Virus record (IMG/VR): IMGVR_UViG_3300020477_000990
Location: 264,150 to 328,149 of that record
Length of the DNA: 64,000 bases
Direction: 5' to 3' (one strand)
Below are positions 11,202 through 64,000 of this stretch, one piece after another (position 1 is the first letter of the stretch; every line of letters begins with the position of its first letter). Below the pieces are notes generated by a model that was not told where the DNA came from, ran no database searches, and saw only the letters and a list, made by a program, of their open reading frames with translations. Made by a program: the position numbers and the translations under genes.

Positions 11202-11231
11202 CAATAATCTAAATTATGTTATTATATTATT

Positions 11232-11564
11232 ATGAAACACAGTTCTAAACCAAGAAAGACATTCGAAATAGGAAAGTTTCAAGGTGATCGTCCTAATTGG
11301 AAAGATCGTAAAGATAGAAAACCAAGATATGAAAAACTTCCTGGAATGGCAGTTGCAGTTCAAGATAATAATGTTGAAAAAGCAATAAGACGACTTAAAA
11401 AAATGTTACAAAAAGAAGGTATGTTTCAAGAATTACGTGATAGACGATATTATGTTAAACCTTCTGAAAAGAAAAGAGTTGCAAAAAAAGCCGCAATAAG
11501 AAGAGCCAAAAGAGATAGAAAATTAGAAGAACTTGGTTTACCCCCAAAAAGATCAAGATACTAG
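11232..11564 (+). CDS. rpsU: 30S ribosomal protein bS21 with N-terminal extension
   Basis: VEKAIRRLKK..QKEG.FQELR.RRYYVKPSEK; TTGACA promoter at 11198. Confidence 0.92.
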   Translation: MKHSSKPRKTFEIGKFQGDRPNWKDRKDRKPRYEKLPGMAVAVQDNNVEKAIRRLKKMLQKEGMFQELRDRRYYVKPSEKKRVAKKAAIRRAKRDRKLEELGLPPKRSRY

Positions 11565-11568
11565 CATT

Positions 11569-12327
11569 ATGAAAGATAAGATTTCAAAATGGATCAAGGA
11601 TTATGCCTTGGACCATAATCGCAAAGCATTGGTTGTAGGAATATCAGGTGGAATAGATTCATCTGTAGTTAGTACTTTGTGTGCTATGACCGGACTACAA
11701 ACTTATGCAGTATCAATTCCAATTAATCAAATTGAATCACAACATGATTTAAGTATGGATCATGGATCATGGTTAGAAGAAAATTTTAAAAATGTTACAC
11801 ATCATAATATTGATTTAGATAGATTATATGAAAGATTTTATTTAGATATGATGTTTGATTTTAATAATGATATGGCTTTTGCAAATTCAAAATCAAGATT
11901 ACGAATGGTTACATTACATCAAATATCAGGAGCAACACAAGGTATAGTTGTAGGCACAGGTAATAAAGTTGAAGATTTTGGTGTAGGATTTTTTACAAAA
12001 TATGGTGATGGTGGAGTAGATATATCACCAATAGCAGATTTTTATAAAACTGAAATTTGGCAAATGGGCAAAGAATTAGGCATACTACAAGAAATTATTG
12101 ATGCTGAACCTACAGATGGATTATGGGAAGATGGAAGAACTGATGCAGATCAGTTACATGGATTATCATATGAGCAAATGGAACACGCGATGAAAAATGG
12201 ATCTGATAGTGAGTATTACGATAAATATTTAGAGATACGAAAACCAAACTTACATAAAATGAAAGAGATACCGGTATTTAAAAATGATAGAGCACAAACA
12301 TCTGATAGTAAGGGCAGAAGTAAATAA
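11569..12327 (+). CDS. nadE: NH3-dependent NAD+ synthetase
   Basis: GISGGIDS, SRLRM, GTGNK, TKYGDG, PTDGL. Confidence 0.95.
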   Translation: MKDKISKWIKDYALDHNRKALVVGISGGIDSSVVSTLCAMTGLQTYAVSIPINQIESQHDLSMDHGSWLEENFKNVTHHNIDLDRLYERFYLDMMFDFNNDMAFANSKSRLRMVTLHQISGATQGIVVGTGNKVEDFGVGFFTKYGDGGVDISPIADFYKTEIWQMGKELGILQEIIDAEPTDGLWEDGRTDADQLHGLSYEQMEHAMKNGSDSEYYDKYLEIRKPNLHKMKEIPVFKNDRAQTSDSKGRSK

Positions 12328-12652
12328 CCCACCAACAGATCAAAAATGGGCCCATACTTGGCTAACAGAGTTAGTGTCTAAAATTGGCATGGAAATATGC
12401 CAAGGTCCTATTACAACGTATGTAAATGTACCAGGTAATAGAGGCTTAACCGGTCTAGTAATTATAGAAACATCACATATAGCATTGCATTGTTGGGATG
12501 AAACTGATCCTGGCTTATTACAATTAGATGTTTATACCTGTGGAAGTTTGCCAACTGATGTTATATTTGAAGAAATTAAACAATTTGATCCTGTTAAAGT
12601 TGAATACAAATACTTAAATAGAGAACGAGGTTTAACAGAGATTAATATATAG
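12284..12652 (+). CDS. speD: S-adenosylmethionine decarboxylase proenzyme
   Basis: IETSHIALHCW and LDVYTCG (pyruvoyl cleavage site). Confidence 0.88.
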   Translation: MIEHKHLIVRAEVNNPPTDQKWAHTWLTELVSKIGMEICQGPITTYVNVPGNRGLTGLVIIETSHIALHCWDETDPGLLQLDVYTCGSLPTDVIFEEIKQFDPVKVEYKYLNRERGLTEINI

Positions 12653-12727
12653 GCGATTAGCTCAGTTGGTTAGAGCATTCCCTTGATAAGGGAAAGGTCG
12701 TAAGTTCGAGTCTTACATCGCCTACCA
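12651..12727 (+). tRNA. tRNA-Ile(GAT)
   Basis: Cloverleaf; anticodon arm TTCCC-TTGATAA-GGGAA; GTTCGA; CCA encoded. Confidence 0.95.
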
Positions 12728-12728
12728 C

Positions 12729-12804
12729 GGGTGATTAGCTCAGTTGGTAGAGCACCTCGTTTACACCGAGGGGGTCGTTGGTTCGAGTCCAGCATTACCC
12801 ACCA
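12729..12804 (+). tRNA. tRNA-Val(TAC)
   Basis: Arm CCTCG-TTTACAC-CGAGG; CCA encoded. Confidence 0.95.
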
Positions 12805-12805
12805 T

Positions 12806-12882
12806 GGAGTGTTAGCTCAACTGGTTAGAGCACCCGCCTGTCACGCGGGAGGTTGAGGGTTCGAGTCCCTTACACTCCGCCA
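12806..12882 (+). tRNA. tRNA-Asp(GTC)
   Basis: Arm CCCGC-CTGTCAC-GCGGG; CCA encoded. Confidence 0.95.
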
Positions 12883-12900
12883 TATAAATATTATAAAGCT

Positions 12901-13146
12901 ATGAAAAAAAATATTAATAATATAGAAGATTTAGATTTACGAACTTTACAAAAAGAAGCCGCAAGAGCTTTAGCATCACATATTGATGGTACTAATAATG
13001 GATTAGCAGAAATTAATAAAAAATGCCATCATAATTCTACTATATTTTATAAAGAAGTTATTAAACTGTATATTGATAAATTTGGCGATTTACCAAGCAA
13101 AACAGGACCAGGAAAAGAAGTATCATTAGTGTCCGATAAATACTGA
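12901..13146 (+). CDS. hypothetical phage protein
   Basis: ATG at 12901 after TATAAATA; the longer ORF call starts inside tRNA-Asp. Confidence 0.6.
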   Translation: MKKNINNIEDLDLRTLQKEAARALASHIDGTNNGLAEINKKCHHNSTIFYKEVIKLYIDKFGDLPSKTGPGKEVSLVSDKY

Positions 13147-13150
13147 TACT

Positions 13151-14203
13151 ATGCCATTAAGTCTTAATAATATAAAAAAGTTTGATATTGAAATTACAAA
13201 TAAATGTAATGCTAGATGTCCAGGATGTATTCGTACGGTAAATGGAGATACACACCCTTTGCTAAAACAAAATATTACTGAATGGTCAATGGAAGATTTT
13301 TCTAATTTAATTCCTAAAGATATTATTAATGGTAAAGAGTTTATATTTGGTGGCACAGTTGATGATCCTTTTATGAATAAAAATATCATACCAATTACAA
13401 AATATATTTTAGATAATGGTGGATCAATTGAAATACATACTAATACAGGAGCAAATACTGAAAAAACATTTAAAGAAATGGGAAGATTAAGTAAAGAGTC
13501 TGGAAGGCTATTAGTAATATTTTCTGTAGATGGATTTGAAAAAACAAATCATTTATATAGAGTAAATGTTAATTGGAATAAAGTTGTTGAAAATATGAAG
13601 GCATATACAATAGCAGAAGGCAACTGTGAATGGGAATATTTAGTTTTTGATCATAATTATGATGATATAGAGAAAGCAAGACGATTTGCAAATGATTTAG
13701 GAATAAAATTTATATTAAGACAAAATGTAAGAAACAATCATAGTTGGGTTAGTAAAAGCAAAGTAAAAGAAAAAGGTGAAATAGTAACTAAAGAGTTTGA
13801 AGTAAAAACAACCGATAAATTTAAACACCCTGAAACAGAAGAAGTAGTCAAATATAATGATAAATTAAAGGTTTCTAAAGAAGAAGGCCAAAGTATATAT
13901 TGTAAAATGTATCATGATAAAAGTGTATTTGTTGATTGGAACTATAAAGTATGGCCATGTTGTTGGTTTGCAACAGAAAATTTTGAACAGCATGAATATT
14001 TTCATATGTTGATTGATCAATTTGGAGAAACTTGGAATAGTTTAAGGTATCATACTTGGAATGAAATACTAGGCCATGATTATTATTCTAAATTATTATA
14101 TCAAAGTTGGAATGGTCAACAATCAGATTATTATAATCCTACTTGTTTTAAGCAATGTGGTGATAATGCATCTAGACAGAGTTATAAAAAAGAACAATTA
14201 TAG
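13151..14203 (+). CDS. radical SAM protein with C-terminal SPASM/twitch-like domain
   Basis: CNARCPGC, FSVDG, VWPCC, CFKQC. Confidence 0.88.
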   Translation: MPLSLNNIKKFDIEITNKCNARCPGCIRTVNGDTHPLLKQNITEWSMEDFSNLIPKDIINGKEFIFGGTVDDPFMNKNIIPITKYILDNGGSIEIHTNTGANTEKTFKEMGRLSKESGRLLVIFSVDGFEKTNHLYRVNVNWNKVVENMKAYTIAEGNCEWEYLVFDHNYDDIEKARRFANDLGIKFILRQNVRNNHSWVSKSKVKEKGEIVTKEFEVKTTDKFKHPETEEVVKYNDKLKVSKEEGQSIYCKMYHDKSVFVDWNYKVWPCCWFATENFEQHEYFHMLIDQFGETWNSLRYHTWNEILGHDYYSKLLYQSWNGQQSDYYNPTCFKQCGDNASRQSYKKEQL

Positions 14204-18958: not shown

Positions 18959-19282
18959 ATGACAGAATCAGGTAACGCAAACGCATCAGCAAATATACAA
19001 ACAACAACTAGTGTTCAAACAGATTTAAATGAACCTAGCAAGTATAATGTTATTTTATTAAATGATGATTATACGCCTATGGACTTTGTTACTGATATTT
19101 TAACTACAATCTTTAGAAAAACAAAAGAACAGGCTGAAGCAGTTATGTTAAAAATTCATGAGAATGGTAAAGGCGTTGCCGGCAGTTATGTATTTGAAAT
19201 AGCAGAACAAAAAGCAATTGAAACTACAGCAAAAGCGAGGTCGCAAGGACATCCGCTTAATTGTACAGTTGAAAAAGAATAA
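18959..19282 (+). CDS. clpS: Clp protease adaptor ClpS
   Basis: YNVILLNDDYTPMDFV, IHENG, EIAEQK. Confidence 0.95.
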   Translation: MTESGNANASANIQTTTSVQTDLNEPSKYNVILLNDDYTPMDFVTDILTTIFRKTKEQAEAVMLKIHENGKGVAGSYVFEIAEQKAIETTAKARSQGHPLNCTVEKE

Positions 19283-19297
19283 TAATAAGGAATAAAA

Positions 19298-20293
19298 ATG
19301 TTTAGATTTTTTACCACCAGAAAATGGTTACTATGGGCCTGGCTAGGTTCAGCAATTATTTTAGGATCACTTTGGGTTCAAGTAAAAATTGATGTTAAAA
19401 TAAATGAATGGTTTGGTGTGTTTTATGATATGATTCAAAAAGCACTTGCAACACCAAATGCAATTACACTACAAGAATATTTTGCAAGTTTATTATCATT
19501 TATAACACTTGCAGGTATGTATGTTGGATTATATGTTTTAATAAGTTATTTTACAGCTCACTTTTTATTTAGGTGGCGTACTGCTATGGTTGAATGGTAC
19601 CATAGTGTTTATGATAAAGCACGTTCTATAGAAGGTGCATCACAAAGGGTTCAAGAAGATACAATTAAGTTTTCACGTATTATGGAAGGACTTGGTACAA
19701 GTTTAATTGAATCAGTTATGATTTTAATTCAATTTATTCCTATACTATTTGGGTTATCACTTGGTATTCCAATATTCTTTTTTGGTGATTGGCAATATGG
19801 TTTAATTACTGGTGCATTGATTTGGACATTAGGTGGTACTGTATTTTTAATTGGGCTAGGTTGGATATTGAGACTAGTTGGTGTTGAATATGATTTACAA
19901 AAACAAGAAGCGGCTTATAGAAAAATTCTTGTAATTGCTGAAGATGATGGAAATGTAAGACCGAAAAAAATTGAAGAATTCTTTGATGATGTTCGTAAAA
20001 TACATTTTAAAAGTTATCTGCGTTATCTATATTTTAATATTGGACGTATGGCGTACTTACAAGCGAATGTATTATCAGCTTATGTATTTTTAGCACCAGC
20101 CATTGTAGCAGGTGTTGTTACACTTGGTGTAATGCAACAAATTATAAGGGCATTTGGAAGAGTTGAAGGTTCAATGCAGTATCTTTTAAAAGCATGGCCA
20201 ACAATCATTGAGTTAGCAAGTGTTTATAAACGTTTAAGAGAATTTGAAGCTAAATTACCTAAAGAAAAAGATGATACACAACGAGTACATTAA
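19298..20293 (+). CDS. SbmA/BacA-like inner-membrane transporter
   Basis: FRWRTAM, IEGASQRVQEDT, EAAYRK. Confidence 0.9.
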   Translation: MFRFFTTRKWLLWAWLGSAIILGSLWVQVKIDVKINEWFGVFYDMIQKALATPNAITLQEYFASLLSFITLAGMYVGLYVLISYFTAHFLFRWRTAMVEWYHSVYDKARSIEGASQRVQEDTIKFSRIMEGLGTSLIESVMILIQFIPILFGLSLGIPIFFFGDWQYGLITGALIWTLGGTVFLIGLGWILRLVGVEYDLQKQEAAYRKILVIAEDDGNVRPKKIEEFFDDVRKIHFKSYLRYLYFNIGRMAYLQANVLSAYVFLAPAIVAGVVTLGVMQQIIRAFGRVEGSMQYLLKAWPTIIELASVYKRLREFEAKLPKEKDDTQRVH

Positions 20294-25518: not shown

Positions 25519-26628
25519 ATGTACAGATATGAAGATATACGAACAGTACATTTAGAAATCACAGCGAAATGTCAGGCCGCTTGTTTGCAATGTGATAGAA
25601 ATGTTAATGGTGGTGAAATAAATCCAAATATTTCACTTGATGAGTTATCTCTTGAAGATTGCAAAAAAATATTTCCACCTGAATTTGTAAAACAATTAGA
25701 TAGTTTGTTTATGTGTGGTAATTTAGGTGACCCAGTTATTGCACAAGATTCACTTGAAGTAATGGAATATTTACGTAGTCAAAATTCTAATATTTGGTTA
25801 AGCATGAATACAAATGCCGGCGCCAAAAAATCAGAGTGGTGGAAAGATTTAGCAAAAATACTTGGTAAGCAAGGCCATGTAATTTTTAGTTTTGATGGAT
25901 TAAAAGATACTAATCATTTATATAGGCAAAATGTTAATTGGGATATATGTATGGATTCGGCACAGGCGTTTATTGATGCAGGTGGTAGAGCAAGATGGGA
26001 TTATTTAATATTTGGACATAATCAGCATCAAGTTGAAGATGCAAAAGCATTATCAGAACGTATGGGATTTGAAAAATTTATGAGTAAAAAAACTGGTAGA
26101 TTTTTTAGTAATGTAAAAGCAAAAGGAAAAGAAGAACATCAAGGTGTAAATCGTAAAGGTAAACAAACACAAAAACTTACAAAGCCAGATGAAAAATATG
26201 TAAACAAAGCTCTTAAGAAAGAAGATTTACTTATAGAAAAATATGGATCTATGAATAATTATTATGATAAAGCACATATTAATTGTAAAGTATTAAAAGA
26301 TATGAATGTATATGTAAGTGCATCAGGACATTTGATGCCTTGTTGTTGGGTAGCAGGACAAATGTACAAGTGGTGGGAGAAGCCAGGAGAAAATCAAATT
26401 TATAGATTTATAGAGCAAGTAGGTGGACTTGATGAGCTATCAGTTTTACAACATGGTTTTAAAAAAGTTTTAGAAGGAGACTTTTTTAATAATATAAAAG
26501 CAAGTTGGAAAAAAACTTCTTGTAATGGCGGCGATGGAAAATTAAAAGTATGTTCTGTTAAATGTGGTACAGAGTTTGATCCATTTGGTGCACAATTTGA
26601 AGATAACTTCGTTACAACAGCAAGGTAA
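25519..26628 (+). CDS. radical SAM protein with C-terminal SPASM/twitch-like domain
   Basis: CQAACLQC, CGNLGDP, MPCCW, CSVKC. Confidence 0.88.
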   Translation: MYRYEDIRTVHLEITAKCQAACLQCDRNVNGGEINPNISLDELSLEDCKKIFPPEFVKQLDSLFMCGNLGDPVIAQDSLEVMEYLRSQNSNIWLSMNTNAGAKKSEWWKDLAKILGKQGHVIFSFDGLKDTNHLYRQNVNWDICMDSAQAFIDAGGRARWDYLIFGHNQHQVEDAKALSERMGFEKFMSKKTGRFFSNVKAKGKEEHQGVNRKGKQTQKLTKPDEKYVNKALKKEDLLIEKYGSMNNYYDKAHINCKVLKDMNVYVSASGHLMPCCWVAGQMYKWWEKPGENQIYRFIEQVGGLDELSVLQHGFKKVLEGDFFNNIKASWKKTSCNGGDGKLKVCSVKCGTEFDPFGAQFEDNFVTTAR

Positions 26629-26637
26629 ATATATAAA

Positions 26638-28107
26638 ATGAGCAATAATAAACTACCATCAAAAACGTTTTGTGCGTTACCGTGGATGCATTTATCAACT
26701 AGACCAGATGGAAATATGCGAGTATGTTGTACAGCTAACGCAAGTTCAGTAGGTGCAACTAATGATAAAAAGCATGGTGGACAAGTTGGTATTCTAAAAA
26801 AAGATAATGGTGTTCCTGCAAACTTAAATAATTCAGATTTAATGTCATCGTGGAATAATGATTATATGAAGAACGTTCGTTTACAAATGTTAAACGGAGA
26901 AAAACCACCAGCTTGTTTAAAATGTTTTAAAGAAGAAGATGCAGGTCATAATTCAAAACGTATGTGGGAAACTGAATATTGGATGAATAGATATTCTTTA
27001 GAAGATATGATTGGTGAAACAAAAGAAGACGGTTCTATTCCACCTAAAATTAGATATATTGATTTGCGTATGGGATCTAAATGTAATTTAAAATGTATTA
27101 TGTGTAGTCCACATGATTCTTCATTATGGGTCAAAGATTGGTTAGACGTATATCCTACAATTAAAAATCCACAGCTAAAGCAAACAATGGGTTGGGATAA
27201 TAAAGGTAAAGTACATGGCGCTGGTTATAACTGGCATAAAAATAACGAAGTATTTTGGAAGCAGTTATATGAGCAAATACCTCATATGTATCAATTATAT
27301 TTTGCAGGCGGTGAGTCTACAATTATAGAAGAACATTATACATTATTAGAAGAAGTTATTAGAAGAGGATATGCTCCTAAAATAGAATTACGTTATAATT
27401 CAAATGGTGTTGAAATGCCAGATAGATTATTTGAATTATGGAGTCATTTTAAAAGAGTGCGTTTTCATTATAGTGTAGATTCAATTGAAGAAATGAATCG
27501 TTATATACGTTTTCCTGCAGATTGGGATAATACAGTTAAACAATTTCATTTGTTAGATAATACAGAAGATAAAGTAGAAGTAACAATTGCCTGTGCAGTA
27601 CAGGCTTTGAATATACATTATATTCCAGATTTTATTAAATGGAAATGGAAACAAAATTTTAAAAAAATAAATGTATGGCCATTTGGAGCAGGTATGTTAA
27701 ATTATCACTTTGTATATTGGCCTGGGCAATTAAATGTAAAAGCATTGCCACAATGGATGAAAAATAAAACAAAAGAAAAATATGAAGCATTTTATCCTTG
27801 GTTATTAGAAAATTGGAAACTATCCGGTGCACCAAGTAAAGAAGCATTTATGGAAGCAAGTTACGGTATTAAAAGATTAAAAGGAATGATTCAATTTATG
27901 ATGTCAGAAGATTGGTCAAGACGTATGCCAGAATTTAGAGAATATATTACAAAATTTGATAAGCAACGTGGCACAGATTTTGCTAAAACTTTTCCGGATA
28001 TGGCTGATATGTTAGATGAGTCATTAGATTATAGTGTTAAACCAATAACCGGTGAAAGTATTGATGAAAAAACAGAGAAGGAATTAGAAGATGGCGGAAC
28101 AATCTGA
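26638..28107 (+). CDS. radical SAM protein with N-terminal twitch-like domain
   Basis: FCALPW..RVCC..CLKC, then CNLKCIMC and FAGGE. Confidence 0.88.
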   Translation: MSNNKLPSKTFCALPWMHLSTRPDGNMRVCCTANASSVGATNDKKHGGQVGILKKDNGVPANLNNSDLMSSWNNDYMKNVRLQMLNGEKPPACLKCFKEEDAGHNSKRMWETEYWMNRYSLEDMIGETKEDGSIPPKIRYIDLRMGSKCNLKCIMCSPHDSSLWVKDWLDVYPTIKNPQLKQTMGWDNKGKVHGAGYNWHKNNEVFWKQLYEQIPHMYQLYFAGGESTIIEEHYTLLEEVIRRGYAPKIELRYNSNGVEMPDRLFELWSHFKRVRFHYSVDSIEEMNRYIRFPADWDNTVKQFHLLDNTEDKVEVTIACAVQALNIHYIPDFIKWKWKQNFKKINVWPFGAGMLNYHFVYWPGQLNVKALPQWMKNKTKEKYEAFYPWLLENWKLSGAPSKEAFMEASYGIKRLKGMIQFMMSEDWSRRMPEFREYITKFDKQRGTDFAKTFPDMADMLDESLDYSVKPITGESIDEKTEKELEDGGTI

Positions 28108-28657
28108 TTTACATAAAAAGTGGGAAGAAATGAAAGACCACGTTACAAAGCCACGTAAAGAGTTAGATGGTATGGCTATTTGTCCATTTGCTAAAATGGG
28201 ATTCAAACGTAATGAAGTTGAAGTTAAATGGGTTAAAAAAGATATGTTTAAAATTGCCAATGAAGCAATTGAAAATTATCCTGAAGAAAAACAGTTAGTA
28301 TTATGTATTGGAGATCCAAAAGATTATTCATTAGAAGAATTAGAAAAATGGGAAAATGAAAACCAAGCAAAAGCAGTTGCAAATGATTTATACATTTATA
28401 CATCTTATAAGTCAGAAGAAAAACAAGGATCAGTAGGAGTTGAAAAAAATACAGATAAACTTATTCCTGGATTAGGTTCTGGTAATAAAGGTTTAGCAAT
28501 CATACAAATACAAGGGTTAAGTGATTTAAATGAAAAATCTGAATGGGTACATAGAAATACAAAGTATTATGATAAATGGAATAAAAAATATTATGATGCT
28601 ATTGTAAAAAGAAGATATAAAGATAGTAACTATGATAGTGAGGAGTTTGAAAAATAA
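28091..28657 (+). CDS. hypothetical protein, DUF1415-like CPFA motif
   Basis: ICPFAK motif. Confidence 0.45.
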   Translation: MAEQSDLHKKWEEMKDHVTKPRKELDGMAICPFAKMGFKRNEVEVKWVKKDMFKIANEAIENYPEEKQLVLCIGDPKDYSLEELEKWENENQAKAVANDLYIYTSYKSEEKQGSVGVEKNTDKLIPGLGSGNKGLAIIQIQGLSDLNEKSEWVHRNTKYYDKWNKKYYDAIVKRRYKDSNYDSEEFEK

Positions 28658-29739
28658 TGGTTAATAATTACAATAAATTTTTTAGTGATACGTCTCTAGT
28701 AAAGTGCTATTCAGAATTTCAACGATTAGAAGAAGTAATTGTTGGTAGTGCATATAAACCAGATTGCTTTGATAGTAGTGAGCAATTTAGCCAAGAAGCC
28801 AAAGACTTATTAAAAAGAGTGTTTACAGAAACAGCAGAAGATTTAGAAGTACTTGTTAGTATATTAAAAGCTGAAGGCATAATAGTACAACGTCCTAAAG
28901 TAATGCAAGATCCACTTGCAAAATATAATATGGGAGAATTTGATATTGAATATGCAAACCAACCTTTGCAACCAAGAGATATATTAGGATTTTATGGTAA
29001 TAAAATTATTGAAGCATACACAAAAGACAGAACAAGATATTTTGAAAATTGGTGTTCAAGAGATATATTAAAGCAATATTATTTGCGTGGTGCAGAGTGG
29101 ATAGCAATGCCACCACCACAATTAAATAAAAAAACATACCAAGATTATTATCAAAATAGTGAAGTACTTTTTCATAATGCTAACTTAATTAAATGTGGTA
29201 AAGATATATTCCATTCACAATCACATCAAAAAGATCCTGTAAAAGGTAAAGGTACAGAACAAGGTTTAGAATGGTATAAAAAGCAATTGCCAGAATTTAC
29301 ATTTAATGAAATACCTGTTGGAGGTCATGCTGATGGTAAAATTGCATTAATTAAACCAGGTTTATTAGTAACTTGGAAAAAAGAATGGATACCAGAAAAG
29401 TTAAAATCATGGGATTGTATTATAACAGAATCAGGAACAAAGTTTCCAGAAGATTTTAAAAAAACACGTAAAGAACATTTTTATAAAGATTATATTGAAA
29501 AATGGTTATCGCATTGGATTGGTTATGTTGATGAAACAGTATTTGATGTTAATATGTTGAGTATATCAGAAGATAAAGTTATTTGTACAGGAACAGATAA
29601 AGAAGTATTTGCAAAATTAGAACAACACGGAGTAACACCTATATATTGGAAATTTAGACATCAATATTTTTGGGATGGCGGAGTACATTGTTTAACAGCA
29701 GATGTAAGACGTAAAGGAGAACAGGAAAATTATTTCTAA
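28657..29739 (+). CDS. amidinotransferase (glycine/inosamine-phosphate family)
   Basis: SEFQRLEEVIVG, QPRD, HADG, FDVN, GGVHCLT. Confidence 0.88.
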   Translation: MVNNYNKFFSDTSLVKCYSEFQRLEEVIVGSAYKPDCFDSSEQFSQEAKDLLKRVFTETAEDLEVLVSILKAEGIIVQRPKVMQDPLAKYNMGEFDIEYANQPLQPRDILGFYGNKIIEAYTKDRTRYFENWCSRDILKQYYLRGAEWIAMPPPQLNKKTYQDYYQNSEVLFHNANLIKCGKDIFHSQSHQKDPVKGKGTEQGLEWYKKQLPEFTFNEIPVGGHADGKIALIKPGLLVTWKKEWIPEKLKSWDCIITESGTKFPEDFKKTRKEHFYKDYIEKWLSHWIGYVDETVFDVNMLSISEDKVICTGTDKEVFAKLEQHGVTPIYWKFRHQYFWDGGVHCLTADVRRKGEQENYF

Positions 29740-31022
29740 TGGACAATCAAGCATGGAAGAAACGTGATTGGGATTGGCACAAAACAATCACTAAAAAATG
29801 TGTAGCACCTTGGCATAGTTTAACTATCGAATGGGATGGTGAAGTATATGCTGATGCTGTGGCGTTTAAACCATATGGAAGTATATATGAAAATACTTTA
29901 ACTGAATTATGGAATTCTCCAAAAGCAGTTAATCTTCGTAAATCATGGAGCAAAGGATTGCCAGATAATATAATATGTGCTAGTTGTATAAAGAAAGAAG
30001 AAACAGTAGGTAGTTCTAGACGACAATACTTTTATAGAAATTTGCCATCTGAATTATTAAAAACAGCAACATATGATCCAGAGCAAAAACCTAATATATG
30101 GTATTTAGAAATTAACTCATCAAATAAATGTAATTTAAAATGTAGAATGTGTAATGGGCAAGTTTCAAGTACTTGGATTAAAGAAGAAACACAATTAGCA
30201 AAAATATCTCCTAGTTGGATGCCAAAAAGAAAAAATGGAAAATACTCTAGAGTTGATTTTGATGTTATTAAAAATGTTTTAGAAAAAAGAGAATATTTTA
30301 AAGATTTGCAATTTTTAAAGTTAACAGGCGGTGAGCCATTAATGGAAGAACAAAATTATCAATTAATGGAACAATTTATTGAATGGGATATTGCAAAAAA
30401 TGTTATGCTTGATATTAACACTAACGGAACATTTATGAATGAAAGATTAATAAACATTGCTAAACATTTTAAATTAGTTAAGTTACATATAAGTTTAGAA
30501 GGAACAGGAGAGTTATATCAATATATACGTGGTGGAGAAAACTTTACTTTAGATCAATTAGAAACAAATATAATTGAATTCAACAAGTTACCAAATACAG
30601 TAATAATTTATACTGTTACAGTACAAATATATAATATTTTTAATTTATCAGATATATGGAATTGGTATTTAAAAATAAGAAAACCAACTAATGAAATTTA
30701 TTTTAAAAATGTTGTAGTTAATCCTCCACATTTAAATTTTCAAATATTACCTAATAGTTTAAAGTTAGAAGCATATGAAATAATGAAACAAGCAGATTTA
30801 CCACAAGGTGAGTATTGGGAATTAGATGATTTTAGTCAAGGTGATATAGGATTTAGCAATATTATGAAGAATTTACAGAATCTAAATACATATAACGAGC
30901 AACGTTTAAAAGAGTTTGTCCAGTTTACACGTGATATTGATACTATAAGAAAAACGGATATTAAAAAAATTGTCCCGCAATTAGCAGGATTATTTGAGGA
31001 AGTATATGAAGCAAGAGCCTAA
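29739..31022 (+). CDS. radical SAM protein with N-terminal twitch-like domain
   Basis: CVAPW, CASC, CNLKCRMC, TGGEP. Confidence 0.88.
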   Translation: MDNQAWKKRDWDWHKTITKKCVAPWHSLTIEWDGEVYADAVAFKPYGSIYENTLTELWNSPKAVNLRKSWSKGLPDNIICASCIKKEETVGSSRRQYFYRNLPSELLKTATYDPEQKPNIWYLEINSSNKCNLKCRMCNGQVSSTWIKEETQLAKISPSWMPKRKNGKYSRVDFDVIKNVLEKREYFKDLQFLKLTGGEPLMEEQNYQLMEQFIEWDIAKNVMLDINTNGTFMNERLINIAKHFKLVKLHISLEGTGELYQYIRGGENFTLDQLETNIIEFNKLPNTVIIYTVTVQIYNIFNLSDIWNWYLKIRKPTNEIYFKNVVVNPPHLNFQILPNSLKLEAYEIMKQADLPQGEYWELDDFSQGDIGFSNIMKNLQNLNTYNEQRLKEFVQFTRDIDTIRKTDIKKIVPQLAGLFEEVYEARA

Positions 31023-32223
31023 AACATTTTGTATTTTGCCATGGATGCATTTAGCAACAAATTCTAGTGGAAATTATAGAGTATGTTGTAATTCAACTCC
31101 AGGTAAAAATTTTATTTTAGATAAAAATGGTGAGCCTTATAAAATTTATAAAGCTGATATTAAAGAAATGTGGAACTCTGAAACATATAGAAATTTACGT
31201 TTGCAACTACTTAAAGAAGAATATCCAGATATGTGTCAACGTTGCTGGAGAGAAGAAGCAAGTGATATTAAATCTGCTCGTCAAAGTTTTAACGAAGCAT
31301 ATTCACATTTTATTGATGGAGCATTATCAAATACAGATATAGAAGGTAAAGCACCATTAAAAGTAGGGTATGTTGATTTACGTTTAGGAAACTTATGTAA
31401 TTTAAAATGTCGTATGTGTAATCCATGGGCAAGTAACCAATGGACTAAAGAATGGAATAAAACAACATCATATGATGGTAAAGATATACCAGAAGATGAA
31501 CGTACGAGATTAGAGCATATGGATTGGCCCACAAATGAAAAAACGTGGGAAAACTTAATGCCAATTATAGATTCAGTAGAAGAAATTTACTTAACAGGTG
31601 GAGAACCTACATTAGCATTAGAACAATATAAGTTATTTGATAAATGTATTGAATTAGACAAAGCAAAAGATATTGTATTAAAGTATAATACTAATTTAAC
31701 TAATATACCACCTAAAATGATTGAGTATTGGAAAAACTTTAAAAAGATTAAGATTAATGCTTCAATAGATGGGTTTGATGAGCTTAATAGATATATTAGG
31801 TATCCAACAAATTGGAAGTCAGTTGATAAAAATCTTAAAATATTTCATGAAATAGAAAAAGAAGGTAAAATGAGAGTGCAGATTCATACTACTGTACAAT
31901 TATATAATATACTTGATATAACAGATTTATTTGAATATGTTGATCAGTTTGGTTATTTTCCGTATTTAAATATATTAGATCATCCAGATTACTTAAATGT
32001 AAGAGTGTTGCCATTGCACCTTAAAGAATGTGTAGCAGAAGAATTACAAAAGTATATTGATAAGCCAAAAGTAAAAGGGTTAATAACTTATATGATGGAC
32101 GAAGATTGGTCACAGCATACAGATAAATTTATTGAATATACTAATTGGCTAGATAAATCACGTAAGCAAAATGTTCTTGATATTGTTCCTGGATTAGAAG
32201 ACATAATAAATTTAAAAAAATAA
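31006..32223 (+). CDS. radical SAM protein with N-terminal twitch-like domain
   Basis: FCILPW..RVCC..CQRC, CNLKCRMC, TGGEP. Confidence 0.88.
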   Translation: MKQEPKTFCILPWMHLATNSSGNYRVCCNSTPGKNFILDKNGEPYKIYKADIKEMWNSETYRNLRLQLLKEEYPDMCQRCWREEASDIKSARQSFNEAYSHFIDGALSNTDIEGKAPLKVGYVDLRLGNLCNLKCRMCNPWASNQWTKEWNKTTSYDGKDIPEDERTRLEHMDWPTNEKTWENLMPIIDSVEEIYLTGGEPTLALEQYKLFDKCIELDKAKDIVLKYNTNLTNIPPKMIEYWKNFKKIKINASIDGFDELNRYIRYPTNWKSVDKNLKIFHEIEKEGKMRVQIHTTVQLYNILDITDLFEYVDQFGYFPYLNILDHPDYLNVRVLPLHLKECVAEELQKYIDKPKVKGLITYMMDEDWSQHTDKFIEYTNWLDKSRKQNVLDIVPGLEDIINLKK

Positions 32224-38076: not shown

Positions 38077-38443
38077 TAAACTTACACAATGGGGATCTTT
38101 AATCGGTGTTATTTGTGCTATCGGTGGTGGATTTTATGCTTGGGGTGAATTTAATACAAGATTAGCAAATATTGAAAGTAGACCAGTTGCTGACATGACA
38201 TCTATAACTGAAGATGTAGCAAATTTAAAAGTAGATATGGTTGATAGAATTACTGCTATTGAAGATAAACTTGAAGCACAATCAGATACAGAATTAGGTA
38301 CAATCCAAGCCGACATTAGTGAAATAAAAGACTCACTAGTTAAAGCATTAAAAGATATCGAGATTCAAAGTAAAGTAAATGAATTGCAAGATCAAAAAAT
38401 TGAACAAGTAAGATTAAAAGCAACAAATCCATTAGCAAATTAA
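38063..38443 (+). CDS. single-TM coiled-coil protein
   Basis: IGGGFYAWGEF TM segment, coiled coil, NPLAN end. Confidence 0.65.
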   Translation: MNVINKLTQWGSLIGVICAIGGGFYAWGEFNTRLANIESRPVADMTSITEDVANLKVDMVDRITAIEDKLEAQSDTELGTIQADISEIKDSLVKALKDIEIQSKVNELQDQKIEQVRLKATNPLAN

Positions 38444-39435
38444 ATTTCAGCGAATGTATGTTGTTTTTTTCCAAAGTGAGAACAACTCTTTTGACATCTT
38501 GACAAGAACATAGGATGGTTTTCATTCCAACTATCTTTTAGTATTTGTGAGAACCATTCATGATCTAATATATCTTGAATATCATGTTCAAGTGAATTAT
38601 TCCAATTAGAACTATATTTAGAAAATTTTTCAGACATATCATCACGTTTGTACCAATTATTATCATACAAATAACAACAAGGCCAAATTTGATAATTAGC
38701 ACCAAAGTAAATTTCACCTTCATGTATTAGTTTACATTTTATATTTAAATTTTTAGTTTCGTTTTTAATTTCAGGATGTTGATATTTTTTATTTGTTAAA
38801 GATACTTTGTTTATAACTTCTTTAGTTTTTTTATTAACTACAGTATGCGTACTTTCTTGTTTCATAGAATAACGTAGTGAAAATTTAAATCCAAGTTTAG
38901 TAGATAGTTGTTGTGCTTTTTCTATATCATCGATATTATGATCAAATGGATTATAAACCCATTGTCCTTTGCCACCAGCATCAGAATATGCAGTCATATT
39001 TTCTACAAGTTTATTCCAATTAACACCAACTCTATAAATGTGATTTGTATTTTCAAAGCCATCTACACAAAAACGCATATCTAATTTTGGATTGTCTTTG
39101 CTAATTGCTCCTAGTTCTGCCCAATATTCTTTTGAACGCAATCCACCGTTAGTAGAAACAATTATAACCTTTGGATTCATAGATAATGTGTATTCACATA
39201 TTTCTATAAATTCTTGATTTACTAATGGATCGCCTAAAACACCACAATAAAAAATTTCTTTGTTTTCTATATATTCTTTTGAGTGTAATACTTTTTTATA
39301 GTTTTCTAGAGTAATATCAGCTAATTCTACATCTGGGTTAGTTTCCCCTTTTAATGTTCTAGCACACCCAGGACATCTAGCATTACATCTAGTGGTTAAT
39401 TCTACTTCTATTTTCTTAAGATTTTGTACGAGCAT
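38440..39435 (-). CDS. radical SAM protein with C-terminal SPASM/twitch-like domain
   Basis: CNARCPGC, CGVLGDP, IWPCC, CQKSC; the only clearly real minus-strand gene; TATAAATA 5 nt upstream of its ATG. Confidence 0.88.
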   Translation of the reverse strand: MLVQNLKKIEVELTTRCNARCPGCARTLKGETNPDVELADITLENYKKVLHSKEYIENKEIFYCGVLGDPLVNQEFIEICEYTLSMNPKVIIVSTNGGLRSKEYWAELGAISKDNPKLDMRFCVDGFENTNHIYRVGVNWNKLVENMTAYSDAGGKGQWVYNPFDHNIDDIEKAQQLSTKLGFKFSLRYSMKQESTHTVVNKKTKEVINKVSLTNKKYQHPEIKNETKNLNIKCKLIHEGEIYFGANYQIWPCCYLYDNNWYKRDDMSEKFSKYSSNWNNSLEHDIQDILDHEWFSQILKDSWNENHPMFLSRCQKSCSHFGKKQHTFAEI

Positions 39436-46834: not shown

Positions 46835-48031
46835 ATGGCAGTAGTTTATAATTTAAAAGGGACATCAAATCCTTATTTTAAAATCGGTAAAAGTGGGTCT
46901 ACCCTATTTCAGGGTACGTCAGATCCTTCAGGTTCATATACTGTAGCAAATGGTGACGTTTGGTTTGATACATCAAATGGTACATTAAAATTTAGATCTT
47001 CAGGTTCATGGTCAGGTATTACAACAGCATCAGATTTAAATGTAACTGGTAATTTAACAGTTAGTGGTACTACAACTACAGTAAATTCTACAACAATTGA
47101 TGTACAAAATTCTATAAGATTTGAAGGTGCTTCAGCAGATGAATACGAAACTATATTAACAGTTGAAGATCCAACAGCAGACAGAACAGTTACGATACCA
47201 AATGCTACAACAACACTAGTAGGTACGGATACTACACAAACACTTACAAATAAAACATTTACAAATCCAACGATCAACAGCAGAAGTCTTACTGGTACTG
47301 TAGTTGGAACAACAACAGCAGACACATTAACAAATAAAACTTTATCAGCTGGAATATTAACAGGAAATACAGTTTTAAGTGGTACAAATGATTTAATTGG
47401 TCTTAGTGGATATACTGGAAACTATTTCTTGCAATTCCAATCAGGAATAACAGTATTATCTGGAGGAGTTGGTACAAGTCAAGGTGTAGATCTTAGAGGA
47501 TCAGGAGTAGTAAGATTGCTAACTGGTGGATCAGTTAGAGTTCATATTGATGATAGTGGTAATGTTGGTATTGGTACTGTTTCTCCAGATCATCCATTAG
47601 ATGTAGCTGGTAATATAGGAACAACAGGTAGTATAGTATTTGAAGGTGCTACAGCAGATGCACATGAAACAACTTTATCAGTAACTGACCCAACACAAGA
47701 TAATACAATTACATTACCAGATGAAACTGGTACAGTTGTAACTAAATCTTCTACTACAGGTGCTATTACAATGCCAGTTGGAACTACAGCACAAAGACCT
47801 GGAACTCCAGCAACAGGCATGATTAGGTTTAATACTGATATAGATTATTTTGAAGGCTACAATGGAGTAAGTTGGGTTAAACTTGGACACTCTACTCCAA
47901 CTGGTGACACACGTGATTATGGTGCTATTACAGATACATCGAAAGTATCTGAAGTTGATTATGGTGCTATTACAGATACAGATGCTACAGAAACAGAATA
48001 TGGTTCTGTAACTGATGACGATGAAGTGTAG
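46835..48031 (+). CDS. fibre/virion structural protein
   Basis: G/T/S-rich; GNLTVSGTTTTVNST, TQTLTNKT, GNVGIGT and GTTAQRP..GMIRFN..FEGY motifs typical of phage fibres. Confidence 0.75.
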   Translation: MAVVYNLKGTSNPYFKIGKSGSTLFQGTSDPSGSYTVANGDVWFDTSNGTLKFRSSGSWSGITTASDLNVTGNLTVSGTTTTVNSTTIDVQNSIRFEGASADEYETILTVEDPTADRTVTIPNATTTLVGTDTTQTLTNKTFTNPTINSRSLTGTVVGTTTADTLTNKTLSAGILTGNTVLSGTNDLIGLSGYTGNYFLQFQSGITVLSGGVGTSQGVDLRGSGVVRLLTGGSVRVHIDDSGNVGIGTVSPDHPLDVAGNIGTTGSIVFEGATADAHETTLSVTDPTQDNTITLPDETGTVVTKSSTTGAITMPVGTTAQRPGTPATGMIRFNTDIDYFEGYNGVSWVKLGHSTPTGDTRDYGAITDTSKVSEVDYGAITDTDATETEYGSVTDDDEV

Positions 48032-59701: not shown

Positions 59702-60634
59702 ATGAGAATATTTCCAAGCAAGGCTTTAATAGGCTTTTTAGCAGTAATATTTGCGTTTGTATTAGTCAGTTGTAGTGAAGCTGAAGCTGTAGAGACAAAA
59801 ATCTACGGTACGTTTAACTACAAATTGAGTAATGACGAGAATAGTTCTGGTACAAGTCATTTAAAGGCTGAAAACAACTCATCGTTGGTAGGCATTGACG
59901 CCGCTGAAGATATTGGCGAAGGCATAACTGGCTTTGCTAAATTAGAAGTAGGTGTTGATACTGATGATGGCAATAACAATCCTTTTGATTCACGTTTAGC
60001 TTATGTAGGCTTAAACTTTGGTCAACTAGGATCGATATCTGCAGGACGTCAGTCATCTCCATTTACTGATAATGTAAGTGGAATAACAAATGTATTTGAA
60101 GTTTATGGTTCAGGTGCAGATCAAAATTTGTTCACACGTGATGCAAATACGATCGCATACTCGAATCAAATGGCGGGAATTACATTTGATGGTCTAGCAA
60201 AGATAGACGGTTCTACAGGTAAGAATGGGATAGATGTTTCAGAAGCAACAGCTACCTATTCTACATTTGGAGTAACTGTAAGTGGTGGTGTATCAAATGA
60301 TCATGTAAATGATATTGATTACTACGGCGCTGGAGTATCTTATGATGCTTCGTCAATGGGTGTACCTGTAAGTGTAGGTTATACTTACACATATAAGGAT
60401 GCCGCAACTGATGTTACAGGCAATGAAATCATTGGATCTTATTCTGTTAGTAATGATTTAAAAGTTACTGGTGGATACGGTAAAATCGAAGATTCAACTG
60501 CATTTTATACAGCAGGAGCATCATATGGAATAACTGGTTCATTATCAACGTATGTTGAATATGAGCATCAAAACAAAACTGGATCAAATAACGATACAGA
60601 CAGTTATTCTACCGGTCTTAAATTTACATTCTAA
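59702..60634 (+). CDS. Gram-negative porin
   Basis: Signal peptide, IYG, S..G..E..G...AKLE, RLAYVGL..G.I.AGR, C-terminal GLKFTF beta-signal. Confidence 0.88.
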   Translation: MRIFPSKALIGFLAVIFAFVLVSCSEAEAVETKIYGTFNYKLSNDENSSGTSHLKAENNSSLVGIDAAEDIGEGITGFAKLEVGVDTDDGNNNPFDSRLAYVGLNFGQLGSISAGRQSSPFTDNVSGITNVFEVYGSGADQNLFTRDANTIAYSNQMAGITFDGLAKIDGSTGKNGIDVSEATATYSTFGVTVSGGVSNDHVNDIDYYGAGVSYDASSMGVPVSVGYTYTYKDAATDVTGNEIIGSYSVSNDLKVTGGYGKIEDSTAFYTAGASYGITGSLSTYVEYEHQNKTGSNNDTDSYSTGLKFTF

Positions 60635-62863: not shown

Positions 62864-63065
62864 TTTAATAAAGCATCCAAAATATATTAAAAAGATGATG
62901 CATGAAAAAGAGCTAAAGCAACGTATAATTAGTTTAGAAGAATTTTATAAGCATTTTGCTCATTTAGAAAAATTAAATAAAGAAGTACATAAGTTAAACA
63001 AAAGAGTTGAAAAGAAATTAGATAAGCTACTTTCTAAAAAAGATAAACCAGATGGCAAAAAATAA
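62847..63065 (+). CDS. small coiled-coil hypothetical protein
   Basis: 72 aa, coupled. Confidence 0.5.
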   Translation: MGKVIDLIKHPKYIKKMMHEKELKQRIISLEEFYKHFAHLEKLNKEVHKLNKRVEKKLDKLLSKKDKPDGKK

Positions 63066-63267
63066 ACCTAAAACTAAAAAACCATATTTAAAAGTTAGAC
63101 TAGTACCAGAAGATTCTAAAATGAAAGACCATGCGTTTTATTATTACGCAATGAAGCCAACTAAAGGCGAAAAGAAAAATCAAAAATTAAGAGTAAGAAA
63201 ATACGATCCAATAACAAGAGAGCACATTTGGTGGGTTGAAAAAAAATTACCTCCGCATAGTAAATAA
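63052..63267 (+). CDS. rpmG: 50S ribosomal protein bL33 (Zn-free type)
   Basis: KVRLV...YY..K...KLRVRKYDPITREH..WVEKK. Confidence 0.85.
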   Translation: MAKNKPKTKKPYLKVRLVPEDSKMKDHAFYYYAMKPTKGEKKNQKLRVRKYDPITREHIWWVEKKLPPHSK

Positions 63268-63278
63268 AAATTCCACAT

Positions 63279-63746
63279 ATGAAAAAACTTTGGTATCAGA
63301 AACGATCATCTGTTGAAGGAAATGGACTTTTTGCTAATCGATATATTGGTAAAGGTAAAAGAGTTATTCAATATACCGGTGATAAAGTTAAAAAGAAAAT
63401 TGGGTATAAACGAGCAGAAAAACATTTACCAAAAATTTTTATATTTGAATTGAATCATCATTATCTTATTGATGGTAAAGTTAGATGGAATCCTGCTAGA
63501 TTTATAAATCATTCATGTAATCCAAATTGTGATATAGAAATAGAAAATAATGAAATTTGGGTAATATCTAAAAAAAATATCAGAAAGCATCAAGAGTTAA
63601 ATTATAATTATGGTTATGCATTTGATACTGTTGACGTTAAAGATCATCCTTGTAAGTGTGGAGCCAAAAATTGTGTAGGATATATTTTAGATGAAGATGA
63701 TTGGCCAAAGTTAAAGAAATTCAAGAAAAAATTGACAAAAGTATAG
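63279..63746 (+). CDS. SET-domain lysine methyltransferase with post-SET
   Basis: GNGLFA, RFINHSCNPN, ELNYNY, CKCGAKNC. Confidence 0.92.
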   Translation: MKKLWYQKRSSVEGNGLFANRYIGKGKRVIQYTGDKVKKKIGYKRAEKHLPKIFIFELNHHYLIDGKVRWNPARFINHSCNPNCDIEIENNEIWVISKKNIRKHQELNYNYGYAFDTVDVKDHPCKCGAKNCVGYILDEDDWPKLKKFKKKLTKV

Positions 63747-63760
63747 AAATGTATTATAGT
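63732..63760 (+). promoter_or_regulatory. sigma70-type promoter of RNase P RNA
   Basis: TTGACA-N17-TATAGT; predicted start about 63767. Confidence 0.75.
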
Positions 63761-63768
63761 AAATACAT

Positions 63769-63922
63769 TAGCATAATCGGGCTATCGCTGGTAACAGAGG
63801 AAAGTCAGGACACAGGCAGATATGTGCAAGTCCAAATAGATTGTCAACGACTGCCAGGACAACGGGTAGGACGCAAAGATAAATGGTAGCAATGAACAGA
63901 ATCCTGCTTATGAATTATGCTA
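63769..63922 (+). ncRNA. rnpB: minimal RNase P RNA (catalytic domain only)
   Basis: Conserved blocks GAGGAAAGUC, GUGCAAG, AGAUAAAUG and AACAGAAUCCUGCUUA; P1, P2, P3, P4 (bulged U), P5, P6, P15 and P16 all pair. Confidence 0.88.
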
Positions 63923-63925
63923 TGT

Positions 63926-64000
63926 GGGGGATTAGCTCAGCTGGGAGAGCGCCTGATTTGCATTCAGGAGGTCAGCGGTTCGATCCCGCTATCCTCCACC
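63926..64000 (+). tRNA. tRNA-Ala(TGC), last A cut by window end
   Basis: Arm CCTGA-TTTGCAT-TCAGG; G3-U70 pair; ends ...CCACC. Confidence 0.93.

Follow-up and report, generated by a model that had tools for sequence, protein, structure and literature searches.

The window analysed here, a stretch of 64,000 nt from IMG/VR record IMGVR_UViG_3300020477_000990 (positions 264,150 to 328,149 of this 328-kb record), carries at its 3' end a near-consensus sigma-70-type promoter, a 154-nt relative of bacterial RNase P RNA and, 3 nt downstream, a gene for tRNA-Ala. The RNA retains only the catalytic half of the bacterial ribozyme, and its elements are arranged as follows:

63732-63760 (+), sigma-70-type promoter with -35 TTGACA (63732-37), a 17-nt spacer and -10 TATAGT (63755-60), matching 11 of 12 consensus positions; the predicted start is at about 63767, 2 nt before P1
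63769-63922 (+), minimal RNase P RNA, 154 nt from the P1 5' end to the P1 3' end
63769-63777 (+), P1 5' strand, pairing with 63914-63922
63781-63786 (+), P2 5' strand, pairing with 63885-63890
63788-63797 (+), P3 hairpin CUG-GUAA-CAG, 3 bp with a GUAA (GNRA) loop
63798-63810 (+), J3/4 and P4 5' strand (conserved region CR-I) with a bulged U at 63805; 63802-04 and 63806-10 pair with 63902-09
63811-63826 (+), P5 (63811-14/63823-26) closing an 8-nt loop in place of the whole S-domain; the loop holds the P6 5' strand (63815-19)
63827-63872 (+), J5/15 (CAA), P15 (63830-33/63869-72), L15 internal loop (AAAUAG 63834-39 and GGGUA 63864-68, containing the GGU that pairs with the tRNA 3' CCA) and P16 (63841-45/63858-62)
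63851-63855 (+), P6 3' strand in the P16 loop, forming a pseudoknot with 63815-19
63873-63884 (+), joining region at the place of the absent P18, equivalent of J15/18 plus J18/2 (conserved region CR-IV)
63891-63909 (+), J2/4 (with ACAGAA) and P4 3' strand (conserved region CR-V), without P19
63923-63925 (+), 3-nt linker (UGU); the base just before the tRNA, N(-1), is U
63926-64000 (+), tRNA-Ala(UGC), whose encoded 3' CCA ends one base beyond the window; an identical contig (L025) shows ...ACCA at this place

All of these helices, as well as the promoter and the tRNA, had been proposed in a sequence-only reading of the window, and every element that it listed was confirmed at its position. In the alignment to the Rfam model of bacterial RNase P class A (RF00010), model positions 1-364/367 were matched to 63769-63923 with 66.5 bits (E=1.9e-20), and in a scan of the whole window the score was 73.6 bits (E=2e-20), which is far beyond chance. 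Both scores are below Rfam's gathering score of 100, so that a default scan at gathering thresholds detected only tRNAs and the RNase P RNA became visible only with E-value thresholds. The alignment contains a deletion of 158 model positions from the P5 loop to P14, replaced by 8 nt, and a second deletion of 24 model positions corresponding to P18, with no nucleotides in their place. Positions 63797-63810 aligned to the CR-I consensus GAGGAAAGUC, AGAUAAAUG at 63877-63885 aligned to the CR-IV consensus AGAugAAUG, and 63896-63910 corresponded to CR-V with J2/4 ACAGAA and the P4 3' strand (...GCUUA); the 8 bp of P4 pair perfectly. Since P4 crosses P2, it is a pseudoknot and has to be annotated with its own bracket type. 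Folding of the single sequence by free energy minimization gave no significant result (z = -1.64), because the two pseudoknots are not modelled.

With a signature pattern, the same RNA was found on 7 IMG/VR viral contigs of up to 328 kb, one of which is the window's own contig, and on about 33 mostly marine metagenome contigs, yielding 27 distinct sequences of 147-166 nt with a mean column identity of 77%. The proposed fold paired 94.3% of cells compared with 29-38% in slid controls, 22 of 45 pairs showed compensatory double changes and none of 500 shuffles reached the observed value. Compensatory changes were present in 8 of 10 aligned P1 pairs, in 5 of 6 P2 pairs, of which 98% of cells were paired, and in 2 of 3 P3 pairs, and P5, P15 and P16 covaried as well. 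In relatives, P3 has 5-7 bp. A P6 of 5-6 bp is possible in all 27 sequences and occurs in five versions (GGCAG/CUGCC, GGUAG/CUACC, GGUGG/CCACC, GUUGAG/CUCAAC and GCUGG/CCAGC), and RNAalifold recovered the nested helices, including P1, independently. The invariance of P4, J3/4 and J2/4 within the family is partly an artefact of the search pattern, which fixed these positions, but P4 showed compensatory changes in two divergent relatives, L075 and L076. Both carry a bulged A instead of the near-universal bulged U, which may mean relaxed or changed function. In contrast, J5/15 and GGGUA were invariant in the 27 sequences although they were not part of the search pattern, and the same applied to most of AAAUAG and of the J18/2 equivalent. 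Absence of covariation among homologues, which the sequence-only reading had named as evidence against its proposal, was thus clearly not observed.

A looser DNA pattern added only chance hits. Nine hits of the main pattern in CPR-like bacteria, two Candidatus Staskawiczbacteria genomes and seven similar metagenome contigs, are not minimal forms: the three that were scanned are ordinary RNase P RNAs of 357-392 nt, in which the CR-II ACAGAAA mimicked the 3' motif, and the other six share their sequence. Searches with blastn and megablast against 50,697 GenBank phage records matched only the tRNA. Other reduced RNase P RNAs of 158-300 nt were observed in tRNA arrays of unrelated viral contigs, and two of these variants likewise found nothing among the GenBank phage records. 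Default Rfam thresholds hide a set of reduced RNase P RNAs in viral metagenomes. Our literature searches retrieved no prior description of such an RNA, and Rfam 15 has no dedicated family.

In 41 of 44 copies, a tRNA for Ala, Asp, Ser or Gln starts 3-11 nt after P1, and all 24 distinct first tRNAs carry an encoded CCA. In relatives, a -10-like hexamer (TATAAT, TATAGT or TACAAT) ends 4-8 nt before P1. The window additionally encodes EF-G, IF-3, the ribosomal proteins L11, S21 and L33, and 7 tRNAs, a translation toolkit in which an RNase P fits. In agreement with the sequence-only reading, which had seen no rnpA, no match to PF00825 was detected among 58 window ORFs of 75-230 aa, and a phmmer search with the E. 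coli RnpA sequence gave no hit in the window or in about 40 related loci; none was found in the next 10 kb either, although a divergent cofactor would be missed by these searches. A search for RnpA relatives intended to build a broader profile returned only Enterobacterales sequences and was not useful for this purpose. No separate S-domain-like hit was obtained in the 64-kb window at E<=1. As only about 84 kb, roughly a quarter of the 328-kb genome, could be examined, an rnpA gene or a separate S-domain RNA could lie elsewhere.

Compared with E. coli M1 RNA and other type A RNAs of about 350-400 nt, the RNA described here retains CR-I, CR-IV and CR-V, P1-P5, the P4 pseudoknot with its bulged U, the P6 pseudoknot, J5/15 and the P15-L15 loop with the CCA-binding GGU. 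It lacks P7-P14 with CR-II and CR-III, and thereby T-loop recognition, as well as P18 and P19, while P16 and P17 are merged and P3 is cut to a stub. Engineered E. coli catalytic-domain ribozymes (Eco CP RPR, Eco CP RPRdelP18 and delP18P3Mini; Mao et al. [quoted passage not shown] However, the E. coli C-domain is about 100-fold slower than the full RNA, so a benefit to the phage is not obvious. Archaeal type T RNase P RNA from Pyrobaculum/Thermoproteaceae (Lai et al. 2010, cited in PMC7191817) is about 200 nt long, works with several archaeal proteins and is the only RNase P RNA of the cell. The RNA in the window has the bacterial signatures L15 GGU, P6 and J18/2, its best match within Rfam's RNase P clan (CL00002) is bacterial class A, and it is presumably an extra copy beside the enzyme of the host. 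Theta ribozymes, which are minimal HDV-like ribozymes, are also phage-encoded, lie directly beside viral tRNA genes and were proposed to help tRNA maturation (bioRxiv 10.1101/2023.06.13.544163), but they have an unrelated self-cleaving fold that acts in cis. The only earlier claim of a virus-encoded RNase P-like RNA that we could find concerns a camelpox/orthopoxvirus RNA (described in PMC3001073); that RNA, from a eukaryotic virus, shows only loose structural similarity and had no processing activity in vitro, whereas the RNA described here is an unambiguous sequence homologue with covariation support.

Taken together, 63769-63922 encodes a real, selectively maintained homologue of bacterial type A RNase P RNA that consists of the catalytic domain only and is carried by a family of large marine, virus-like (jumbo-phage-like) genomes rich in tRNA and translation genes. 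We consider it more likely than not, though with only moderate confidence, that it acts in trans as a minimal RNase P RNA with the protein of the host, which the sequence-only reading had inferred as the probable partner. In this scenario, the RNA would be transcribed from its own promoter as the 5' part of a transcript that continues into the next tRNA, and RNase P cleavage at the tRNA 5' end would release the 154-nt RNA with a 3-nt tail. The released RNA may then bind host RnpA and function as a low-specificity RNase P that matures the CCA-bearing pre-tRNAs of the phage, with substrates held through the L15 GGU-CCA pairing, J5/15 and the protein-leader contact instead of T-loop recognition. 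Transcription unit, catalysis, protein partner and biological role are inferred in this model, in the absence of activity, expression or RNA-end data.

An alternative, which we regard as unlikely but cannot dismiss, is that the RNA acts as a decoy that binds RnpA and titrates it away from the host RNase P RNA, shutting down host tRNA and RNA maturation without cleaving substrates itself. All regions thought to contact RnpA (P3, P15 and the J18/2 and J2/4 equivalents) are retained, the promoter is strong, and a decoy role was once considered for the poxvirus RNA (PMC3001073). However, the phage carries many tRNA genes of its own that need 5' processing, so a pure inhibitor would hurt it, and elements for substrate contact without a known role in protein binding, namely the L15 GGU, J5/15, the P4 bulge and the P6 pseudoknot, are conserved and covary. 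In addition, the same architecture is catalytically active in vitro (PMC5839562).

Equally improbable in our view is a function mainly in cis, in which the RNA processes the tRNA tethered to its own 3' end and the tether replaces the missing S-domain, or in which it recruits RnpA or host RNase P to that transcript. The close spacing to tRNAs of four different identities is in favor of this possibility. On the other hand, a relative designated L015 keeps an intact RNA with no tRNA within 260 nt and is followed by an ORF instead, which argues for action in trans, and L075 has no tRNA in 3.8 kb. Moreover, only the first tRNA of an array would benefit, and a 3-nt linker leaving the far end of a P1 of 9-12 bp probably cannot reach the active site near P4, although this is a geometric inference.

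Slightly less probable still, the ribozyme may use a phage-encoded partner, either a divergent RnpA or an unrelated basic protein, so that the phage would carry a self-sufficient RNase P. Many window ORFs have no family assignment and these genomes encode other translation proteins, but apart from the negative RnpA searches within the examined sequence, no ORF family is shared next to the RNA across subgroups, and no candidate for a dedicated cofactor emerged.

That the replicon is not a phage but a very reduced cellular or organelle-like genome, with this RNA as its only, degenerate RNase P RNA, appears very unlikely. The gene content is cell-like, with EF-G, IF-3, L11, S21, L33, DnaK, ClpXP, Hfq, DnaE and Suf genes, no capsid or terminase gene lies in the 84 kb that were read, and the group B contigs carry cytochrome b, TolC-like and type I secretion genes. 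Conversely, the contigs are catalogued in IMG/VR, every gene called over the 20 kb around the RNA is on one strand, as are 46 of the 52 window ORFs of at least 150 aa, ribosomal protein genes are scattered singly and not in operons, and no rRNA was detected. Phage-type genes are present, including a baseplate-wedge/tail-fibre-like ORF at 46835-48031 related to the HTVC008M baseplate wedge protein, DenV and a T4/T7-type ligase, with strong PHROG matches in relatives. Viral origin is inferred from cataloguing and phage-like genes, not from capsid or terminase genes. Most large ORFs are orphans; tblastn with an 864-aa orphan ORF gave no phage match, and relatives of the phage porin yielded no informative taxon names that would point to a host. 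Finally, a decaying, functionless remnant of a captured host rnpB or an assembly artefact (some other short RF00010 hits look like deletion products or scaffolding artefacts: L053 contains NN, and L028 and L065 have odd deletions) is contradicted by the constant length and architecture in 27 distinct sequences from independent assemblies, the compensatory changes in seven helices, the conserved promoter and the conserved position before tRNAs.

RNase P RNA has been treated as a cellular and organellar gene, with a two-domain design regarded as obligatory in Bacteria and S-domain-less forms as an archaeal oddity or a laboratory construct. If the RNA is functional, it would be the first virus-encoded RNase P ribozyme and the smallest natural bacterial-type one. 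The chances are about even that phages with many tRNA genes carry their own catalytic-domain-only RNase P RNA and load it with host RnpA to gain a tRNA 5'-processing activity that does not read the tRNA elbow, and that the family is one of several independent reduced forms (154-300 nt) embedded in phage tRNA arrays, which would make this a general viral strategy and not a one-off. A naturally selected 154-nt catalytic domain would give a small, easily synthesised ribozyme for structural work and for guide-sequence applications, and would define by natural experiment the minimal functional core of P1-P6, P15/16 and L15, matching the prediction from deletion biochemistry that P6 is needed and P18 is dispensable. 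It would also add tRNA 5' maturation to the list of translation steps that large phages take over, linking it to the phage tRNA arrays, tmRNAs, ribosomal proteins and factors seen on the same contigs.

Reading of the region 63400-64000 showed that each of the helices listed in the sequence-only reading is present at the coordinates it had proposed. At curated thresholds, Rfam reported only the seven tRNAs of the window, whereas with E-value thresholds applied to 63700-63935, RF00010 (bacterial RNase P class A) aligned model positions 1-364 of 367 to 63769-63923 at 66.5 bits (E=1.9e-20), and a scan of the whole window gave 73.6 bits (E=2e-20). The tRNA downstream of the RNA was placed at the same position by ARAGORN and Rfam, and a promoter scan identified a motif upstream of it but no terminator before the tRNA. 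The features of this locus are:
63732-63760, promoter TTGACA-17 nt-TATAGT, matching 11 of 12 consensus positions
63769-63923, region aligned to RF00010
63926-64000, tRNA-Ala(UGC)

P1, P2 and P3, the GAGGAAAGUC block, J5/15 GCAAG, P15, AAAUAG, GGGUA, AGAUAAAUG and ACAGAA...GCUUA all aligned to the consensus at high posterior probability. In contrast, 158 model positions, comprising everything between the P5 strands and thus P7-P14, are replaced by 8 nt, and the 24 positions of P18 are replaced by none.

To identify relatives, we scanned for a pattern made of the two P4-flanking motifs held 68-98 nt apart, since ordinary RNase P RNAs have more than 230 nt between them. IMG/VR yielded 7 viral contigs, including the window's own contig (IMGVR_UViG_3300020477_000990, 328 kb) and one of 242 kb, while metagenomes yielded 45 contigs and genomes 3 records. 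About 33 of the metagenome hits, many of them from Tara Oceans and other marine assemblies, belong to the same RNA family, resulting in 27 distinct sequences of 147-166 nt. These fall into two subgroups, A (window-like, with a P3 of 3 bp plus a GNRA loop) and B (with a P3 of 5 bp and a different P6). RNase P RNAs from two Candidatus Staskawiczbacteria genomes and a similar metagenome contig (loci L059:7610-7966, L060:4969-5360(-) and L021:3351-3707(-)) are full length (357-392 nt) but have many non-consensus stretches, and the L060 copy falls just under Rfam's threshold (99.1 bits), in line with published reports of diverged CPR RNase P RNAs. Locus L028:825-991(-) is a 167-nt RNase P RNA that keeps P18 but lacks the S-domain and P15-17 and scores 108 bits, above threshold, whereas locus L053:3720-3891(-) is a 172-nt form that contains NN and is probably a scaffolding artefact.

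Base pairs were counted on the alignment of the family with P4 and P6 written as pseudoknots. Standard pairs are formed by 94.3% of cells, compared to 29-38% when the 3' partners were slid by 1-3 columns, 22 of 45 pairs show changes on both sides, and no shuffle of 500 reached the observed values. P1 (8 of 10 pairs), P2 (5 of 6), P3, P5, P15 and P16 all covary, and P6 can form in every sequence and exists in five versions. RNAalifold, which cannot see pseudoknots, recovered P1, P2, P3, most of P5, and P16 on its own. Motifs that were not part of the first search pattern are invariant or nearly so across the 27 sequences, namely J5/15, AAAUAG, GGGUA and ACGCAAAG-AU-AAUG. P4 never varies inside the family, but much of it was fixed by the search pattern. 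Two further scans that used only J5/15-L15 motifs recovered the same seven viral contigs plus two divergent RNAs, L075:782-939(-), with 158 nt and an RF00010 score of 79.4 bits, and L076 (about 3214-3411, -), with 198 nt. Their P4 helices read AAC(A)CCGGA/UCCGGGUU and ACC(A)CCUGA/UCAGGGGU, so that the changes are compensatory, but the bulge is A instead of the near-universal U. L076 additionally has ACAAAA instead of ACAGAA, and these two relatives may be functionally shifted or relaxed copies.

In 41 of 44 loci, a tRNA gene on the same strand starts 3-11 nt after the P1 3' strand. Depending on the lineage it is Ala, Asp, Ser or Gln, and it is often the first of an array. All 24 distinct first tRNAs carry an encoded CCA, and the base before the tRNA, N(-1), is U in 12, A in 6, C in 5 and G in 1. 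In the relatives, a -10-like hexamer ends 4-8 nt before P1. The RNA therefore probably starts at or near P1, and its 3' end is most simply made by RNase P cleavage of the following tRNA. Relative L015 has an intact RNA followed by an ORF instead of a tRNA, and L075 has no tRNA in 3.8 kb.

The flanking genes differ between lineages, and no ORF is always adjacent. In the window, L33 and a SET-domain protein are encoded upstream and a cysteine desulfurase downstream. The RNA sits among iron-sulfur cluster assembly genes, with SufB- and SufC-like ORFs upstream in L001, a related contig, as judged by reading their sequences and not by a family scan (ORFs 790-2220 nt and 50-790 nt upstream of the GAGG motif at 9754), and with the cysteine desulfurase and an IscA-type protein, identified by Pfam calls, downstream of the window (read via contig L070:10772-11980 and 19010-19333). 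In one group A lineage, tmRNA genes with the tag peptide ADENLALAA lie about 1.5 kb upstream of the minimal RNase P RNA (L003:10573-10892, L005:2675-2992, L026:2019-2337, L049:2220-2540(-), L056:3705-4024 and L057:3970-4290(-)).

Of the 52 ORFs of at least 150 aa in the window, 46 are on the + strand. Besides the RNA, the window encodes a set of translation genes together with seven tRNAs:
1858-3927, EF-G
4690-5109, ribosomal protein L11
10644-11198, IF-3
11232-11561, ribosomal protein S21
63052-63267, ribosomal protein L33

These genes are scattered singly over 64 kb of a virus-catalogued contig, and three ribosomal proteins plus two translation factors is a large translation set for a virus. 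Weak YrlA (Y RNA-like) hits at 12696-12753 and 12770-12834 overlap the tRNA-Ile/Val/Asp cluster and are almost certainly due to the tRNA-like module of that model. The window further encodes the chaperones and proteases ClpX, ClpP, ClpS, Hsp20 and DnaK, two cold-shock proteins, the repair and nucleic-acid proteins DenV, an ATP-dependent DNA ligase, SNase and an exoribonuclease, as well as RpiB and PRPP synthetase. At least seven radical-SAM or SPASM-domain ORFs were found (8420-9106, 13151-14203, 25519-32223, 38440-39435(-)), four of them in one block (25519-32223), which suggests a peptide-maturation or cofactor pathway. A Gram-negative-type porin gene is located at 59702-60634, but its relatives at 45-50% identity, although very numerous in marine assemblies, carry no taxon names and thus did not reveal the host. 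The next 10 kb adds Hfq, an Hc1-type protein, an M17 peptidase and the start of DnaE.

ORF 46835-48031 resembles the baseplate wedge initiator of Pelagibacter phage HTVC008M and cyanophage proteins, and relatives carry ORFs with very strong PHROG matches. In contrast, no capsid, portal or terminase gene was seen in the 84 kb examined. Group B contigs carry a lone cytochrome b gene between tRNAs, a 1180-aa repeat protein, and TolC-like and ABC-exporter-like genes (L004:6160-7428(-), 7940-11482, 11502-13025, 13006-13773; all identified by reading their sequences), a content that is unusual for a phage. A phage origin is therefore probable, but not proven.

A phmmer search with E. coli RnpA (from NC_000913) against all six-frame ORFs of the window and about 40 related loci gave nothing better than E=0.28. 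A Pfam scan of 58 window ORFs of 75-230 aa found no PF00825, and the precomputed Pfam calls for the next 10 kb show none either. Likewise, no second RNase P fragment that might point to a split enzyme was found in the whole-window Rfam scan at E<=1, although these negative results together cover only about a quarter of the genome.

A direct yardstick for the possible mechanism is provided by work on the E. coli catalytic domain alone, which cleaves at the correct site with and without C5 protein, about 100-fold slower than the full RNA (Mao et al., 2018; PMC5839562). Its activity depends on a P6-like pairing, P18 contributes nothing once the S-domain is gone, and a version lacking P18 and with a shortened P3 still cleaves at +1. 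The natural RNA has exactly this set, with P6 kept and covarying, P18 gone and P3 reduced to a stub. It also keeps the L15 GGU, the partner tRNAs encode CCA, and an example without a tethered tRNA exists. The best explanation is therefore a trans-acting minimal RNase P that relies on CCA pairing, J5/15 and a protein-leader contact instead of T-loop recognition, with the host's RnpA as cofactor. Alternatively, the RNA could be a non-catalytic RnpA decoy or a cis-acting leader, it could function with a phage-encoded cofactor, or the replicon could be cellular. Without experiments these possibilities cannot be excluded, but we consider them less likely. A decaying relic is contradicted by the covariation. 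The minimal RNA is real and its structural interpretation in the sequence-only reading as a catalytic-domain-only type-A RNase P RNA is right, whereas the functional interpretation proposed there, a phage-encoded ribozyme probably borrowing host RnpA, is the most likely one but untested.

Rfam 15 has no dedicated family for this RNA, which fails the threshold of RF00010. Full-text literature searches revealed no phage-encoded RNase P RNA, although prior description cannot be ruled out because many subscription journals were outside their scope. Known are the archaeal type T (PMC7191817), diverged but full-length CPR RNAs (PMC8172020), metagenomic type A/B surveys with no mention of phage or of a truncated form (PMC1874661), an inactive camelpox RNase P-like RNA (PMC3001073), and theta ribozymes beside phage tRNAs.

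When the same two motifs were held 99-129 nt apart, seven more viral contigs of 12-191 kb were hit, six of which carry 190-207-nt RF00010 hits that span the whole model, at 58-118 bits. Five of these six sit inside or beside large tRNA arrays, two of them with tmRNA genes, whereas the sixth, in L064, has a short ORF downstream instead and the nearest tRNA is about 4.8 kb away. Including the forms from L074 and L076, the reduced homologues of 190-300 nt, each hit spanning its whole Rfam model, lie on unrelated IMG/VR contigs of 39-191 kb:
L063:12072-12271(-), reduced RNase P RNA homologue
L064:6195-6396(-), reduced homologue followed by an ORF
L065:10596-10802(+), reduced homologue exceeding Rfam's threshold
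L066:1941-2132(-), reduced homologue
L067:482-672(-), reduced homologue exceeding Rfam's threshold, with the window's architecture plus a P19-like hairpin
L068:1378-1575(+), reduced homologue
L074:5694-5990(-), 297-nt form exceeding Rfam's threshold, on a 173-kb contig with 26 tRNAs
L076:3214-3411(-), divergent RNA matching the archaeal model best (39.9 bits)

None of them matches GenBank phages by blastn. In addition, a 177-nt RF00010 hit (L061:3931-4107(-), 72.4 bits) sits in the middle of a tRNA array on a 20-kb contig binned as an Elusimicrobia MAG, which may be a phage or prophage that was binned with the MAG. Reduced RNase P RNAs thus recur in tRNA-rich viral contigs, and the window family is the most reduced of them.
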